Source of the DNA: Selaginella moellendorffii
Taxonomy: Eukaryota > Plantae > Lycopodiophyta
DNA length: 64,000 bases
Assembly: GCF_000143415.4 (NCBI RefSeq)
Contig: NW_003314269.1
Location: 3,601,969-3,665,968 of the forward strand
Reading direction: 5' to 3'
Positions 27,391 through 34,060 of this stretch are shown here, one piece after another. Numbering within the stretch: position 1 is the stretch's first letter; each line of letters opens with the position of its first letter. Both the position numbers and the translations under genes were made by a program. Below the pieces are notes generated by a model. That model saw only the letters and a list, made by a program, of their open reading frames with translations, did not search any database and had not been told where the DNA came from.

Positions 27391-28235
27391 ATATCGGCAG
27401 CATGAAAGAGAGGATGGTGAACGAACATATTTGCTTCTTTTTATGTTTCCACAATCCCAAATTTACCTGGAAAATCAAAATGCTCCTCAGAGCTTTTATT
27501 TACTGACTCTATTATTCAAGCAAAGACAAAACACTACATGAAGACTTGTGGTGGGGATTCATGCCAAGACTTGCCTGCTCAACTTCTACAGGAAGACCTG
27601 GATCAAGTCTAGTGTATGTAAATACTTGCAAAGGCTCTTCTAAACATTGGAGCTATTGGAGCTAACAACAACCCAACAGAAGAGGGAAAAAAATAAAATA
27701 AAAATGGAGAACAAAAGTTGTAAAAAAGATGCAAATTTCCATGGAAAGATCCCATGCAAAGCAAACAGAAATATTGAAGATTTAATTGTGAAAAAATTTC
27801 TATTGGCCTGTGGCTTGATGCCTACAATAGAACACAATGATCTGGAACCACAATGCCTATAATTTTCATAAAAACCAAGCTTTATGAAATTTTCTGATGC
27901 AACCAAAAGGAAACAACTTGTATTCCTTGTAAGTAAGATGTAAGCTACAATCCACCACGCTTACAATCCATCATGCTTTATGTAAGTTTCCTTTAATATG
28001 GACTTTGGCTACTTATATACATTCCTTGTAGATATAAAATTTTAAATCCACCATGTTTCATGCAAGCACCACACTTATTTGCAAATTCACTCTTTAATTT
28101 TGACTGCCTGCAAAATTACCTATCCTCAAAAGACATGTAGCTTCTAACCCTAAACTTTCATAATTATATAGCTGTCATTGTTTTTCGTGCTCCGAAAACA
28201 AATGTATTACTTTTATTTAGGGCTCTAGTCGGGGT

Positions 28236-30002
28236 CTATGTGAGTGAGGTATGTTGCGATTTTCGATTTCCTGCGGCTTTGCAGTTGCCTTGGACCAGAT
28301 TTTCGCTTCCAACGCACTTCCAGCACAGGAACAAGCGGGTTGGATCCACGCTCTCCTTGATCGCCTTGAGCGCCGAGTACTTCTCCCCGAAGAACGCGTC
28401 CTGCCAGTATGGCTCGAAGTAGTCCGCCTCGTTCTTGTAGCACCCTCCGCCGGGCGTGATGTTGCGAAGAATGTCGTCGGTCGTGGTAAGATACTGGAAG
28501 ATTTGCTGCCGCTCTTTCACAGTCGTGCTGTCGTTCCAGGTCCGGGAGAGGCTGACATGCCACAGAGCGTCCCTCCAGACAGCGCTCAGGGAATTGTTCC
28601 TGCCCTGGACGCTCGCTGCCGCGCCTCCAAACACGAACAAGCCGAAGATGGGACTGAAGCTCCGCTCGAAGAGAATTCTCACGAGGGCGTTTGTCAGCAC
28701 CGCCGGTGAGTCCTGGATGATCGTCCTGGGCATGAACCGCGTTGCCAGAGCCCGAGGCGCGCCTGTTAGATCGGTGCACACTCCGGGATTGGTCGCGCAG
28801 AGGACTCCGTCGTGCCACTGGACGAAGTTTGGATACGAGGTGACGGTGTAGGTGATGACGAGGAGCTGGGGATGCCCCTCGACGTAGGAAACCAGGGGAG
28901 CAAACGCCGCCCGTGCCTCCGCGGCTGTTCCATTCGGCAGCACGAAAGAGAGGGTGATATAGTTCGTGTAGAGGAAGAAGTAGCCGGCAAGCCGAGCTTC
29001 GTCCATGGAAGGCGTGACTTCCACAAACTTGGCGATCAGATCTTCGTGGCTGGAGCGAGTGGCAGACGCAGCGATGAACAGAGTCTGGACGTAGCCGAGC
29101 TGGAGATCAGGGAAAGTCCGGTACGTCGCGGAAACAACGACGCCGAAAGTTCCTCCGCCGCCACCTTTGAGAGCCCAGAACAGGTCCGGGTTTCGGCACC
29201 GGTTGGCTACTCGGACTCGTCCATCAGCCGTCACCACCGTGAACTCGAGAGCATTGTCAGCAGCGTAGCCGAAAGTCCGCGACAAAGGCCCGTGGCCACC
29301 GCCTTGGACGAAGCCTCCGGCAGCACTCGGGGAGGATCCCATCGGCCCGACGGCAACCCGGTTCCTCTGGCGCAGAAAGTCGTAGAGGAAGTCCCAAGTA
29401 ACACCAGGCTGGGCAGTCACAGCAGGGACCGGATCACTTACTGGACAACTTTGCGGAACGAAAGAGTCGTTCGTGAAGATGTTTGTGAGATGGTGGAGCC
29501 AGATGCACAGCGAGCCAGGCGCAGTGCTCCGGCCAAGCCAGTCGTGCCCGCTCGATTTGATCACCAGCCGCAAGTTATACTTCTTGGCGAAGACGACTCC
29601 GGCCTGGATGTGAGACACACTGGAAACGTTGATGGCGTAGATGGAGACGTCGTCTTGGTAGCAGGGACTGGAAAGAGCGCCGGTTCCATTCAGCGGGCAG
29701 CCGAAACCGGTGATGCCGGACTCCCAGTTCGGATACTGCATAGCTCCGACAACCTCGCTCCTCGCGAACGGATTGTTTTGGAGCTGCCTAGCAGCGCTGC
29801 AAGCGACCGGATCGTATTGCGGAGTGTGGCACGGCCAGGCGTATGGCTTTGGTGCGAGGAGGCGGCCATCGATGGAGCGATTGAAAGCTGACCAGATTGT
29901 GGAGCTTGGCCAGCAGGAGCTCCGAGGCGTGCATTTGCAGCTGCTCTCTCCATAGCTGCTAAGCAGGAGAGAGAGAAGAATCAGATGAAAGGACAATTCC
30001 AT
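28236..30002 (-). CDS. Secreted FAD-linked oxidoreductase (VAO/BBE superfamily, fungal-type), copy 1, intronless
   Basis: 588-aa ORF. Signal peptide, CKCTPRSSCWPSSTIWSAFNRSIDGRLL, RLVIKSSGHDWLGRS (covalent-FAD His), GGFVQGGGHGPLS, DLFWALKGGGGGTFGVV, and BBE C-terminus YKNEAD..WQDAFFG..LKAIKESVDP..LFLCWKCVGS. Confidence 0.93.
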   Translation of the reverse strand: MELSFHLILLSLLLSSYGESSCKCTPRSSCWPSSTIWSAFNRSIDGRLLAPKPYAWPCHTPQYDPVACSAARQLQNNPFARSEVVGAMQYPNWESGITGFGCPLNGTGALSSPCYQDDVSIYAINVSSVSHIQAGVVFAKKYNLRLVIKSSGHDWLGRSTAPGSLCIWLHHLTNIFTNDSFVPQSCPVSDPVPAVTAQPGVTWDFLYDFLRQRNRVAVGPMGSSPSAAGGFVQGGGHGPLSRTFGYAADNALEFTVVTADGRVRVANRCRNPDLFWALKGGGGGTFGVVVSATYRTFPDLQLGYVQTLFIAASATRSSHEDLIAKFVEVTPSMDEARLAGYFFLYTNYITLSFVLPNGTAAEARAAFAPLVSYVEGHPQLLVITYTVTSYPNFVQWHDGVLCATNPGVCTDLTGAPRALATRFMPRTIIQDSPAVLTNALVRILFERSFSPIFGLFVFGGAAASVQGRNNSLSAVWRDALWHVSLSRTWNDSTTVKERQQIFQYLTTTDDILRNITPGGGCYKNEADYFEPYWQDAFFGEKYSALKAIKESVDPTRLFLCWKCVGSENLVQGNCKAAGNRKSQHTSLT

Positions 30003-30404
30003 GGCTTGCTGGACTTCTCTTCCTTGTGCCTACTTAAAGCGTGTGTGGACCACAACACGATCACTTCGGCGACGTAAGTGTCCTGCCTTTTCTTCTTTCG
30101 CTCCAAAGTCTTTCATAACGACGCTTGGATTTAATCAGGTCTTGGAGTATATTGTCAAATGTGAGTTTCTTTTATGATCTTGGCAGCAGCCAAACCCGGA
30201 AGATATATTCGACCCAAAAATTCCAAGTGAAAGGTTTGATGCAAGTTCCACGTTGTTTTCGCTGGATGGTAAGCTAACATTTTCCAGACGTTTCAGCAAC
30301 GCCAGCACTGTCCTGTTTCGCGTATCGGTTTTGGCTAGCATTTATACTCGACTTTCCCGCGATAGAAATGGTAAGTCTCTTTTACTCTTGCGTAAGAACA
30401 ATTT

Positions 30405-32153
30405 CTAAGAAGCTCCACCTTGAACCAGGCTTTCACTTCCAACGCACTTCCAACACAAGAACAGGCCAGTCGGATCCACGCTCTCCTTGATGGCCTTGAG
30501 CGTCGAGTACTTCTCACCAAAGAACGACTCCTCCCAGTATGGCTCGAAGTAATCTCCTTCGTTCTTGTAACACCCTCCGCCAGGCGTGATGCTTCGAAAC
30601 AGACCATTCGTGGAGGTGAGACTTCGAGAAAACTGATATCGCTCCTCCACACTCGTGCTCTCGTTCCAGGTCCTAACGATAAGTACATGCCACAGAGCCT
30701 CCCTCCAGACGGCACTCAGGGCATTGTTCCTGCCTTGGACGCTCGATGCTGCGCCTCCAAACACAAACAAGCCGAAGATGGGACTGAAGTTACGTTCAAA
30801 CAGAACTCGCATGAGGGTGTCGGTCAGCACAGCTGGTGATTCCTGGAAGATCTTCTTGGGCATGAACCGCGTCGCGAAAAGCCCGCTTGTGCCGGTTGCA
30901 TCGGTGCACAGTACTGGATTGACTGCGCAGAGAACTCCGTCATGCCACTGGACGAAAGTGTCGTGGGAAGTGACGGTGTTGTTGACGACCGAGAGCTCCG
31001 GGTTCTTATCGACGTAAGAAACCAGGGGAGCAAACGCAGCCTGTGCTTCCGCGACTGTTCCATTCGGCAGCACGAAAGAGATGATTACGAGGCTGGTGTA
31101 GATGTAGAAGTAGCCGGCAAGCCGAGCTTCGTCCATGGCAGGCGTGACTTCCACAAACTTGGCGACGAGATCCCTGTGGCTCGAGGGGCTGGAAGACGCA
31201 GCGATGAACAGTGTGTGAAGGTAGCCAAGCTTGAGCTCAGGAAAAGTCCGGTACGTCGCGGAAACCACGACACCGAAAGTCCCTCCGCCGCCACCTTTGA
31301 GAGCCCAGAACAACTCCGGGTTTTGACACTGGTTGGCTACTCGGACTCGTCCATCAGCCGTCACCACCTTGAGCTCGAGAGTATTGTCAACAGCGTAGCC
31401 GAAAGTTCTTGACAGAGGCCCGTGGCCACCGCCTTGGACGAAACCTCCGGCAGCACTCAGGGAGGATGCCATAGGCCCGACGGCGACTCGTCCTCTGGGG
31501 TCGAGGAAATCATAGAGAGACTTCCAAGTTACTCCAGGCTGGGCAGTCACAGCAGCGAGCGGATCACTCCCCGGACAACTCTCGGGAACGAAGGAATCGT
31601 CCGTGAAGATGTCCGTGAGGTGGTGGAGCCAGATACACAGGGAACCAGCGGCAGTGCTCCGGCCAAAGTAGTCATGCCCGGTGGACTTGATCACCAGCCG
31701 CAAGTTAAACTTTCGCGCGAAGAGAACTCCGGCCTGGACGTGAGAGACGCTGGAGACGTTGATGGCGTACGCGGAGACTTGGTCCTGGTAGCAGGGAGTG
31801 GAAAGAGCGCCGCTTCCATTCAGCGGACAGCCGAGACCAGCGATGCCCGACTCCCAGGTTGGAGTTTGCATGGCCCCGACCACGTCGCTTCGCGCGAAGG
31901 GATTGTTTTGGAGCTGCCTAGCAGCGCTGCAAGCGGCCGGATCGTATTGCGGAGTGTGGCACGGCCAGGCGTATGGCTTTGGTGCGAGGAGGCGGCCATC
32001 GATGGAGCGATTGAAAGCCGACCAGAGTGTGGAGCTTGGCCAGCAGGAACTCCAAGGCGTGCACTTGTGGCCTCCATCGCTGCTAAGCAGGGAGAGTGGA
32101 CTTAAGATCGAAAGGAGGAGGAGGAGGAGACGAGCAGGATGGAAGAACTCCAT
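30405..32153 (-). CDS. Secreted FAD-linked oxidoreductase (VAO/BBE superfamily, fungal-type), copy 2, intronless
   Basis: 582-aa ORF, tandem paralog of 28236-30002 with the same motifs (KSTGHDYFGRS, ELFWALKGGGGGTFGVV, YKNEGD). Confidence 0.93.
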   Translation of the reverse strand: MEFFHPARLLLLLLSILSPLSLLSSDGGHKCTPWSSCWPSSTLWSAFNRSIDGRLLAPKPYAWPCHTPQYDPAACSAARQLQNNPFARSDVVGAMQTPTWESGIAGLGCPLNGSGALSTPCYQDQVSAYAINVSSVSHVQAGVLFARKFNLRLVIKSTGHDYFGRSTAAGSLCIWLHHLTDIFTDDSFVPESCPGSDPLAAVTAQPGVTWKSLYDFLDPRGRVAVGPMASSLSAAGGFVQGGGHGPLSRTFGYAVDNTLELKVVTADGRVRVANQCQNPELFWALKGGGGGTFGVVVSATYRTFPELKLGYLHTLFIAASSSPSSHRDLVAKFVEVTPAMDEARLAGYFYIYTSLVIISFVLPNGTVAEAQAAFAPLVSYVDKNPELSVVNNTVTSHDTFVQWHDGVLCAVNPVLCTDATGTSGLFATRFMPKKIFQESPAVLTDTLMRVLFERNFSPIFGLFVFGGAASSVQGRNNALSAVWREALWHVLIVRTWNESTSVEERYQFSRSLTSTNGLFRSITPGGGCYKNEGDYFEPYWEESFFGEKYSTLKAIKESVDPTGLFLCWKCVGSESLVQGGAS

Positions 32154-32517
32154 GCTCGGTAAAAACTTCCTTTGCTTCCATTCGCTAAGTAATGAGCAGT
32201 GTCACCCATGCAAGCAAGCCTGACTTTGATTGCATGGTTAAAGTAGAACACTAACATATTTGATAAACTAGTACCAAAATGATTATAGTTTCAGAGTTTA
32301 ATCGAAGGACAATACTTCCATGAGCTTCAAAACTAGTGTTCTTGGCGAACTTTTTTTTTTTTCAGGAAGGCGAGGAGAATGGAAGGACTCCATGCTCGGT
32401 AAGAACTTCTTTCGCTTGTTTCTGACTTTGATCGCACGCATGGTTGTTCTAGAGCTTTAATCGAAGGACAATACTTCCATGAGCTTCTAAACGAGTGTTC
32501 TTCATCTTGGCGAAGAA
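32125..32517. repeat. Tandem partial duplication of the oxidase copy-2 start/promoter region
   Basis: atggaa..actccatgctcggtaa.aactt occurs at ~32139 and ~32378. tttaatcgaaggacaatacttccatgagcttc occurs at ~32297 and ~32456. Confidence 0.8.
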
Positions 32518-32534
32518 AAAAAGCTGTTTTTTTT

Positions 32535-34060
32535 TCATCCTTTCCACACGGTTTTTGTTGGTGGCGAGCTTGGCTTTCCAACTGGATTGTCACTGTTCGC
32601 AGTGGTGCGCTTCTTTTCGGACTCGAGCAGAGCTCTGATGTTTGCGTCGATGCTGGAGAGCATTTGCTTGATATCACCCCGGCCCTTGCCTTGGACTTCC
32701 GGATCCTCGCATAAGTTGTGCATCTCGAGGAGCGTGTTTGCTAGCGCGCTTGGCACGTCTCTGTCTCTTTCCTTCTCTTTCTCCTTCGCAAAGCTCACGG
32801 AAGTGGAAGGGACTGATCTTCTCGGAGACTTTGGAGTGGCCGGAGAGGCCGGAGAGGCCGGAGATCGAGGGGACATGACGAGGCCGATTCTGGCCCTGGC
32901 ACGAAAAGATAAAGAAAAAAGTGTGAGAGATCATATCGTGCATGAGTGTTTTGCAAGGCACGGCACTGCGACTGCTTAGCTTACATGCGTTCCGCAGTGG
33001 GAGACGTCGGCGCCTGAGAGCTTTCGTCCTTTTTACTGCTCTGAAAAAACAAAAAAATAAACATGATTTCATTCTGGACGTGATCTTGAACGATCAGTTT
33101 CAACAAGAAAACAAGACCAAACTTGAGAGTGGCTGAAAGGGAGATCTAGAAACGTATAAACAAGAACAAAAAAATTCTAAAAGAAAGCGAAGAAAGTGAT
33201 TGTACCTTAACTGGGACTCCAGATTTCTGAATGACCGCATGAACATTGTCCAGGAGAACTTGCACATCTTTGTCCAGAGCATCGGTGCTTCCACCCGTGA
33301 CGTTCCAGCTTTCGCGTTCCAGGTCCTTCTGTAGCTTCCTCAGCATTTTCACCATGGATATGGTTTCTCCAAGGTCGTCACCCTGGAGGCTCACTTCTGC
33401 GCAAACGAGGAGACACAAAGAACACTATTTTTCAATGAGGCAAGAGCTGGCTACGAATGGAGGAAAGAAAATAAAAGAGCAAAGACGGAAAAAGTGTTAC
33501 TCGCCCCATAGACTTCCAAGCATCCATCCAACCGTGGCTTTCTTGCGGAGAGCTTTCACCTCGGCCTCGAGCTTCAACTTCGCCCAGTCGTCTCTCTTTC
33601 TTCGGTAACCAGTCAGTTCTTCCTTTTTCTGGAGCTCCTGGTTTAATTCTCGAATCTTGCTTTCGAGTTCCTGCAACAAAGAAAACTCCACGTTCGTTAG
33701 TTTCGCGAAGAACAAAAGAACTCAAGAAAGAAAACTCTCTAAGAGGAAGGAGAAGAAGTTCCTATCTCCCAAGAACAACCGAGAGCGCGCCAAGAACTTT
33801 ACTTTGACTCGCCTGGGTTCTCCGTCGTGCAGCCCATCGTGCTTGGATTTTGGCCCGGGTCCGAGCGAAAAACCCATCTCTAGCCTTTTCTTGAGCTCTT
33901 TGTTCTCCGCCTCGAGCGAGGTTTGCTTCTTCTGGAAATCCTGCTTTTGCTTGTCATAGACACCTTCCATGGATCGCAAGCACTCGGCAAGCTTGGCATT
34001 CCTCTTCTCATACTCGTCCGCAATCTCCTGCCTTATCTGGGAGAAAAAACTCTCCTCCAT
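32535..34060 (-). CDS. Multi-exon coiled-coil protein of unknown function
   Basis: E/K/Q/L-rich heptad exons at ~34060-33810, ~33670-33500, ~33400-33205, ~33040-32985 and ~32895-32535, with GT-AG borders. SP-repeat segment SPRSPASPASPATPKSPRR. The start may lie in an upstream exon. Confidence 0.65.

Follow-up and report, generated by a model that had tools for sequence, protein, structure and literature searches.

The closest described relatives of the genes reported here are two secreted flavoenzymes of the fungus Myceliophthora thermophila, MtVAO615 and MtVAO713, which represent a subclass ('clade II') of vanillyl-alcohol oxidase (VAO)-type oxidases (Ferrari et al. 2018, PMC6017366). Both have a secretion signal and hold flavin adenine dinucleotide (FAD) through an 8-alpha-N1-histidyl bond (His157 in MtVAO615, His159 in MtVAO713), with an optional second link via Cys222 in MtVAO615 and Ser231 at that position in MtVAO713, which is monocovalent. 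At the catalytic-Tyr site of other VAO-type oxidases they carry Glu (Glu519/543), accompanied by His237/246, and a small gatekeeper (Val225/Pro234) admits O2 to the flavin, a small residue here accompanying O2 reactivity. For MtVAO713 the sole known substrate is ricinoleic acid, whose secondary alcohol it oxidises weakly; MtVAO615 has no known substrate. Neither enzyme showed carbohydrate activity, and relatives (a Hypomyces alcohol oxidase and ecdysteroid-22-oxidase) act on bulky secondary alcohols (PMC6017366). Here we describe two tandem genes, A and B, in a 64,000-nt stretch of DNA from the lycophyte Selaginella moellendorffii (the whole stretch analysed, hereafter the window; locus at ~3.62–3.64 Mb of the 3.67-Mb scaffold GL377573.1, assembly GCA_000143415.2). 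They are nuclear genes for secreted oxidases of the MtVAO615/713 subclass and probably descend from an intronless fungal gene that was acquired near or before the lycophyte–fern divergence and then duplicated.

Compared with all PDB sequences, the oxidases had MtVAO713 (6f74) and MtVAO615 (6f72) as top matches (E 1e-62, residues 30–578), followed by EncM and then plant berberine bridge enzyme (BBE)-like proteins at E 1e-11 to 1e-20, mostly over the FAD domain. The AlphaFold2 (AF2) model of B (predicted template modelling (TM) score 0.76) has the two-domain VAO fold, with an FAD-binding domain and a substrate cap. Foldseek TM scores were 0.77–0.81 for 6f72/6f74 and ~0.6 for all others, and this match stands at least 12 orders of magnitude ahead of any other PDB fold; the fold search gave >300 matches at E <= 0.001, and among the matches listed 50 of 50 were VAO/BBE-type. 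By sequence and fold, A and B belong to the MtVAO615/713 subclass, that is, to the isoamyl-alcohol-oxidase/ecdysteroid-22-oxidase group of the VAO/PCMH superfamily, and are not canonical plant BBE-likes. Some fungal relatives are automatically named 'CAZyme family AA7', but GOOX and ChitO match only at E 1e-8 to 1e-10. A preliminary description of the locus, made from the sequence, had assigned the pair to a fungal rather than a canonical plant type. The resemblance to the fungal subclass stands; the family is not exclusive to fungi, as bacteria, bdelloid rotifers and tardigrades also carry members.

Pfam domains are identical in A, B and the canonical plant BBE-likes (FAD_binding_4 and BBE, both scoring above the gathering cut-offs in A and B), which would fit ordinary, fast-evolving BBE-likes. 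We regard this as practically untenable. AtBBE15, Phl p 4, THCA synthase, PpBBE1 and EcBBE matched only within the FAD domain (E 1e-11 to 1e-18), whereas the fungal subclass matched over the full length (E 1e-62); their folds scored ~0.6 against 0.77–0.81; and A and B have Glu instead of the catalytic Tyr, together with an extra N-terminal Cys module. The two proteins do not nest within a plant BBE clade.

Active-site residues were compared in pairwise alignments with MtVAO615/713 and in an 89-sequence alignment that includes 18 bacterial proteins (positions in Table 1). The FAD-linking His is invariant (89 of 89), and Glu at the catalytic-Tyr site is kept in all sequences but one (88 of 89). 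At the second-link position, plants have mostly Ser, Ala or Gly. Because A and B lack the second-link Cys (Gly222 and Ala229), a monocovalent flavin is predicted for both, like that of MtVAO713; all 18 bacterial sequences keep this Cys, and a bicovalent flavin is therefore predicted for them. The Selaginella paralogue P0139, unlike other plant members, also keeps Cys here (GASCPWVG) and may, judging from this motif, still bind FAD bicovalently. The gatekeeper is Val in 83 sequences and Ile in 4, while Leu occurs only in B and Pro only in A. A and B also keep the N-terminal Cys pair and the C-terminal CxxC of the subclass. The two motifs that the preliminary description had quoted are present in both proteins, as KCTP(R/W)SSCWPSST(I/L)WSAFNRSIDGRLL near the N-terminus and an LFLCWKCVGSE tail near the C-terminus.

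Copy B was used to query 5.8 billion proteins in a word-indexed search, which returned Selaginella paralogues (37–45% identity), the ferns Adiantum capillus-veneris, A. nelumboides and Ceratopteris richardii (37–44%), early-diverging fungi (Calcarisporiella, Mortierellomycota and chytrids; 35–42%), and many bdelloid rotifers, a tardigrade and Dikarya (32–37%). Repeated with a profile of the plant members, the word-indexed search recovered no plant lineage beyond Selaginella and ferns. Because the claim of acquisition depends on absence, we ran an exhaustive profile search of 1.84 billion representatives, which gave 1,856 hits at E <= 1e-30, of which the ten best-scoring new ones were named. 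Three of the ten were further paralogue clusters of S. moellendorffii; the others belonged to early-diverging fungi (Calcarisporiella, Umbelopsis, Entomortierella, Mortierella alpina, Gongronella and Sorochytrium), apart from a single protein of Mycena. Only Selaginella and ferns (Adiantum, Ceratopteris and three transcript-like Logan contigs) had plant-profile scores above those of the fungal hits, and no seed plant, bryophyte or alga was among the named hits of either profile search. The vertically inherited clade spanning algae and land plants that the preliminary description had held out as the opposite outcome thus did not appear, no algal or bryophyte members having been found among these hits. 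Full-length bacterial relatives (28–38% identity) came from Massilia, Caballeronia, and Acidobacteriota and Proteobacteria metagenome-assembled genomes. The local amplification proposed earlier extends well past the tandem pair: with at least six further loci, the Selaginella genome holds at least eight. The gene model of one Selaginella paralogue, P0011 (717 aa), includes a PF03083 (MtN3/SWEET) hit, which is probably an annotation fusion of adjacent genes and not a real domain fusion.

Trees were built from 83 rows, from 89 rows with 18 bacterial outgroup sequences under a site-heterogeneous model, from a thinned set of 45 rows and from 55 rows. The 83-row tree united Selaginella, ferns and the three Logan contigs, which fell among the ferns, in one clade (Shimodaira–Hasegawa-like approximate likelihood ratio test (SH-aLRT) support 95), with Calcarisporiella as its sister (80). 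Rooted with bacteria, the 89-row tree separated bacteria from eukaryotes with support 100 and again recovered the plants as one clade (88). Plants, Calcarisporiella and rotifers grouped at 98. Around this group stood Mortierellomycota, other Mucoromycota and Agaricomycetes, and further out branched chytrids, tardigrades and two Dikarya clades. The 55-row tree, likewise rooted with bacteria, joined plants, Mucoromycota and Mortierellomycota (92) and placed A and B as sister to the ferns (96). Discrete characters of the 89 sequences agree with the tree and tie the plants to the eukaryotic or fungal type rather than the bacterial one: plants have the Cys31/Cys37 pair and the His244 of the former and, like it, have lost the second-link Cys, whereas bacterial sequences have Phe at the His244 site (18 of 18) and mostly lack the Cys pair (16 of 18).

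Vertical descent from the common ancestor of plants and opisthokonts, with loss everywhere except in fungi, lycophytes, ferns and a few invertebrates, corresponds to plants lying outside the opisthokont sequences, and we evaluated such topologies with approximately unbiased (AU) tests. With all opisthokonts as one clade and plants outside, the difference in log-likelihood (delta lnL) was 21.3 for the 45 rows under a posterior mean site frequency (PMSF) model (P = 0.108) and 50.9 for the 89 rows under LG+G4 (P = 0.032). With fungi as one clade and plants outside, after removal of rotifers, tardigrades and long rows, it was 12.6 (55 rows, PMSF; P = 0.015). The topology of vertical descent was thus disfavoured in all three tests and rejected in two, which amounts to moderate support against it. 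Deep branches had modest support, and the site-heterogeneous 45-row test left this history standing; it is nevertheless improbable, because the named plant-profile hits included neither algae, bryophytes or seed plants nor any further eukaryotic supergroup, plants stood beside Mucoromycota/Mortierellomycota in every tree with chytrid and Dikarya clades outside, and dozens of independent losses would be required.

Separate acquisitions by lycophytes and ferns from related fungi, or passage from plant to plant, would account for another feature of the trees. Selaginella copies are paraphyletic to ferns, with A and B joining the ferns (96), and a single clade of all Selaginella copies was rejected (55 rows, PMSF, delta lnL 16.7, P = 0.015). 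Together these results imply that the family either diversified before the lycophyte–fern split or moved between the two lineages, and the paraphyly is explained equally well by lycophyte-to-fern transfer and by ancient duplication. Support for plant monophyly also varied between 55 and 95 with the data set. Even so, plants formed one clade in three of four trees, and the fourth did not reject it (45 rows, PMSF, delta lnL 6.7, AU P = 0.30); no fungal sequence interrupted the plant clade in the larger trees; and site patterns and single-exon structure are common to the plant members. On balance, we consider several transfers unlikely.

A bacterial donor, such as the soil bacteria Massilia, Caballeronia or Acidobacteriota, is highly improbable, although full-length homologues exist there and two of them (L013 and L044) carry a CxPGQxCWP module. 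Bacteria stand apart on a long branch as a clade of their own (support 100), all 18 keep the second-link Cys and show Phe at the site of His244, which is present in every plant sequence and almost every other eukaryotic one, most have twin-arginine translocation (Tat) signal peptides and no Cys pair, and the plant proteins are closer to fungal ones (35–42% identity). The bacterial loci (L003–L045, for example L003 1159–3198 and L013 1393–3168) are from soil and plant-associated bacteria; in L013 and L044 the eukaryote-like module stands behind lipoprotein-like leaders.

The preferred history, acquisition from a fungus, would therefore have its donor in the Mucoromycota/Mortierellomycota grade, with an intronless gene entering plants before or near the lycophyte–fern divergence. 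Repeated duplication, including that of the A/B pair, would have followed, with retention under purifying selection and loss, or failure to become fixed, in the seed-plant lineage. The acquisition by an early plant lineage that had been suggested for this locus is supported by the patchy distribution, by the position of the plant clade within fungi in the bacteria-rooted trees and by the AU tests; it is not specific to Selaginella and appears to predate the lycophyte–fern split. Single-exon genes occur in other plants and loci of the family (Selaginella P0139, L083 6001–7785 on GL377619.1, between GRAS and PPR genes; Adiantum P0009) as well as in fungi (Calcarisporiella P0006, Mortierella P0020). 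Since both fungal and plant relatives are intronless, this state could have been inherited from the donor, and no retroposition step is needed. Intronless nearest fungal genes, together with a codon GC content like that of the plant neighbours, indicate that the transfer is old.

Fungal-type sequence and the lack of introns would equally be expected if A and B came from an endophyte and had been misjoined to plant DNA, and endophyte contamination is documented for lycophyte assemblies. Contamination or a chimeric join is effectively excluded here. The pair lies inside a 3.67-Mb scaffold among intron-bearing plant genes: all five neighbours in the 20-kb locus have spans exceeding their coding sequences (CDS), and the window also carries NAM/NAC and RWP-RK domain exons, which belong to plant-type transcription-factor families. 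Contigs of four public runs were mapped onto 27500–33400. One colinear contig from an independent DNA run (29907–31135) extends from the 5' end of A through the spacer into the 3' part of B, with allelic single-nucleotide polymorphisms relative to the window; one RNA contig connects the 5' end of B with spliced last exons of the upstream 362-aa gene. Junctions of the locus are in this way crossed by both DNA and RNA contigs. A compositional anomaly as a signal of horizontal gene transfer was sought through GC content at third codon positions, and none was found, the oxidase genes (0.66–0.71) lying within the range of neighbouring exons (0.52–0.73). No fungal protein exceeds 42% identity, the family occupies its eight or more loci on different scaffolds alongside a 98%-identical allelic copy, and homologues occur in three fern genomes.

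Both genes are single-exon and lie at the positions described initially: open reading frames (ORFs) and public gene calls agree, and the span of each call equals exactly three times its protein length plus 3 nt. They share 79% protein identity (550 ungapped residues). Nucleotide similarity (84%, 28288–29973 versus 30418–32096) stops at the CDS borders, and the non-coding flanks have diverged completely. Between A and B, dN/dS in the oxidase frame was 0.27 with dS 0.45; four of the five other frames gave ~1 or higher, and the fifth (0.36) is read antisense, its third codon positions falling on those of the oxidase frame. The frame-wise comparison singles out the oxidase frame as the selected one, so A and B are not chance ORFs, and their coding sequences point to purifying selection on both. 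A dS of 0.45 also makes the duplication old.

Signal peptides were predicted from the 9-residue Kyte–Doolittle maximum. Alignment of A and B with the fungal enzymes begins right past the 26-residue signal sequences of the MtVAO enzymes, the mature part of A aligning from the end of that of MtVAO713, and the AF2 model of B has low pLDDT (predicted local distance difference test) at residues 1–27, with an isolated helix at 7–16. Beyond the N-terminal segment, a scan of both proteins found no transmembrane-grade stretch and no endoplasmic-reticulum-retention tail. N-glycosylation sequons number 8 in A and 7 in B, and Cys residues 16 and 14.

Table 1 Features of the oxidase locus (nucleotide positions refer to the window)
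Feature	Position	Strand	Details
Oxidase gene A	28236–30002	minus	Single-exon CDS, 588 aa; ORF and 1767-nt single-exon public call in GCA_000143415.2
Oxidase gene B	30405–32153	minus	Single-exon CDS, 582 aa; ORF and 1749-nt single-exon public call
Predicted signal peptide, A	29946–30002 (~aa 1–19)	minus	Hydrophobic stretch LILLSLLLSS; hydropathy 2.9
Predicted signal peptide, B	32076–32153 (~aa 1–26)	minus	Hydrophobic stretch LLLLLLSILSPLSLL; hydropathy 3.4
FAD_binding_4 / BBE, A	aa 124–265 / aa 521–558		Pfam
FAD_binding_4 / BBE, B	aa 129–272 / aa 528–565		Pfam
Predicted FAD-linking His	His153 of A, 29544–29546; His160 of B, 31674–31676	minus	Aligns to His157/His159
Second-link (6-S-cysteinyl) position	Gly222 of A, 29337–29339; Ala229 of B, 31467–31469	minus	Aligns to Cys222/Ser231
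Gatekeeper	Pro225 of A, 29328–29330; Leu232 of B, 31458–31460	minus	Aligns to Val225/Pro234
His beside flavin	His237 of A; His244 of B		
Glu replacing catalytic Tyr	Glu525 of A, 28428–28430; Glu532 of B, 30558–30560	minus	Aligns to Glu519/Glu543
A–B spacer	30003–30404		402 nt; holds promoter and 5' untranslated region (UTR) of A, 3' UTR of B, antisense-RNA exons
Spliced antisense RNA over A, spacer and B	28254–31135	plus	Joints in RNA-like runs X1, X2, X7
Antisense-RNA introns	~28485–28538, 30074–30138, 30232–30294, 30370–30427, 30614–30667	plus	Joints 28484>28539, 30073>30139, 30231>30295, 30369>30428, 30613>30668
362-aa coiled-coil-like protein gene	32535–34060	minus	Multi-exon; ends ~150–380 nt upstream of B start codon
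Intron-containing neighbour genes			Na+/H+ exchanger; zf-U1/OCRE protein; 362-aa protein; 1106-aa protein; ABC transporter

RNA-derived contigs from three studies covered both ORFs colinearly and showed no minus-strand (CT..AC) joint within the ORFs. Splice joints in runs of three studies revealed an RNA antisense to A, the spacer and B; they were absent from DNA run X13. All five introns of this RNA have canonical GT..AG borders on the plus strand. Two of them are 54 nt long and occupy homologous sites in A and B despite a dS of 0.45, and the other three are in the spacer. No ORF of its own was found in the spliced antisense RNA, and a protein-coding plus-strand RNA was considered and rejected: its only long ORF mirrors the oxidase frame, and dN/dS favours the minus-strand oxidase frame. 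Unspliced forms over both 54-nt sites also exist and are compatible with sense mRNAs, though no proof of them, as the contigs carry no strand. The antisense RNA may be a regulatory natural antisense transcript.

Upstream of B, apparent 5' UTR introns (CT..AC joints 32894/32984 and 33040/33206) were dismissed as belonging to the last exons of the separate 362-aa gene, which ends so near B that very little space is left for a B promoter. Short tandem repeats occur immediately upstream of B (32125–32502): 32290–32343 resembles 32447–32502 (93%), and 32125–32177 resembles 32364–32417 (85%), this second pair duplicating the surroundings of the B start codon. RNA-like run X1 contains a variant without 159 nt (32297–32455) upstream of B.

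A plausible reaction can be drawn by analogy with MtVAO713 acting on ricinoleic acid and with its relatives acting on bulky secondary alcohols, and with the lack of carbohydrate activity seen for MtVAO615 and MtVAO713. The signal peptide would route A and B through the secretory pathway, with the apoplast or vacuole as destination, and FAD would attach autocatalytically through a single 8-alpha-N1-histidyl bond to His153 (A) or His160 (B), much as in MtVAO713. Glu525/532 and His237/244 would flank the flavin while hydride is taken from a carbon bearing the hydroxyl group of a rather bulky and probably lipophilic substrate, giving a ketone or aldehyde, and O2 would reoxidise the reduced flavin to yield H2O2. 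The copies may differ in this last step. An exchange of the gatekeeper from Ile to Val turns the dehydrogenase Phl p 4 into an oxidase (PDB titles), and by that precedent the bulkier Leu232 may lower the O2 reactivity of B, making it slower with O2 and more dehydrogenase-like, while A has the small Pro of MtVAO713. As to function, the preliminary description had proposed a possible role in apoplastic defence or specialised metabolism.

Several points weigh against reading A and B as an old fungal acquisition of this chemistry. Vertical descent withstood one of the three AU tests (P = 0.108), the backbone was unstable upon thinning to 45 rows, and all trees came from a 'quick' search with SH-aLRT support only. 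The donor is weakly resolved (Calcarisporiella as sister, support 80), and no Glomeromycotina or Endogonales sequences were in the sampling, which was not aimed at them. The test of Selaginella monophyly was framed after the tree had been seen. For many genomes of lycophytes, ferns, bryophytes and gymnosperms no protein sets have been deposited, which leaves absence there unproven. Sense transcription is putative, the contigs being unstranded and every strand-informative joint in the ORFs and spacer being antisense. Finally, the chemistry of A and B is taken from analogy.

Beyond the acquisition itself, a fuller scenario can be offered tentatively. Mucoromycota-grade fungi include the earliest plant symbionts. 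An ancestor of vascular plants might have captured an intronless gene for a secreted flavoprotein oxidase from a fungus of this grade; its gene lineages would have split before the lycophyte–fern divergence, and seed plants would have discarded them. A and B would then have moved to new chemistry, as their long stem branch, unique Pro and Leu gatekeepers and possible oxidase/dehydrogenase split might indicate. In the same scenario the spliced antisense RNA, with its 54-nt intron kept in both copies, hints at antisense regulation.

The type of event and the enzyme superfamily are already known; for this family as a plant acquisition, we found no earlier report in the searchable literature, although large catalogues of horizontal gene transfer may list it. 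A Lycopodium genome preprint mentions BBE and horizontal gene transfer only in other contexts. With this locus, the few known fungus-to-plant transfers that were kept and expanded in early vascular plants gain a well-delimited example. The subclass is nearly uncharacterised even in fungi, and a plant family of at least eight members offers a route to its natural substrates. It is also a possible source of apoplastic H2O2 or of specialised-metabolite oxidation in lycophytes and ferns, and the gatekeeper difference between A and B is a natural experiment on oxidase/dehydrogenase tuning in VAO-type flavoenzymes.

Among known systems, bdelloid rotifers (P0008, P0022, P0023, P0033, P0046 and P0060) and the tardigrade Paramacrobiotus (P0049, P0117 and P0133) have the same family, expanded in each and forming a clade of its own with support 100. 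Both groups are non-fungal eukaryotes known for foreign genes, and their placement in separate clades points to independent acquisitions of the fungal family. A parallel within plants is offered by the microbial terpene-synthase-like (MTPSL) genes, which Li et al. (2012) and Jia et al. (2016) reportedly described as first seen in Selaginella, expanded in non-seed plants, absent from seed plants and attributable to ancient horizontal transfer. Like the A/B family, MTPSLs are microbial-type enzymes of specialised metabolism with a non-seed-plant pattern; unlike it, they have a different fold and chemistry and also occur in bryophytes, where no oxidase member was found.

The canonical plant BBE-likes (EcBBE, AtBBE-like 15, PpBBE1, THCA synthase and Phl p 4) share with A and B the superfamily and the Pfam domains; they too are glycosylated flavoproteins that are secreted, and in them as well the gatekeeper tunes reactivity with O2. 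They differ in typically having bicovalent FAD and a catalytic Tyr, in lacking the N-terminal Cys module and C-terminal CxxC tail, and in occurring across land plants, whereas the A/B family is restricted, among plants, to Selaginella and ferns.

MtVAO615 (6f72/6f73) comes far closer, with E 1.1e-62, the best fold match (TM 0.77/0.81) and the same His and Glu in the active site; it departs from A and B in Cys222, where they have Ala or Gly, and, in the alignment, in lacking the Cys pair of the N-terminal module. MtVAO713 is alike in full-length homology (E 1e-62), fold (TM 0.77) and secretion signal, in the N-terminal CxPxxxCWP module and C-terminal FxCxxCVGxE tail, and in the FAD-linking His without a second-link Cys, Glu for the catalytic Tyr and His246. 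Identity to it is only ~24–30%, the pocket differs (Tyr100, for example, aligns to Gln) and the host here is a vascular plant. Its Pro gatekeeper recurs in copy A only, copy B having Leu.

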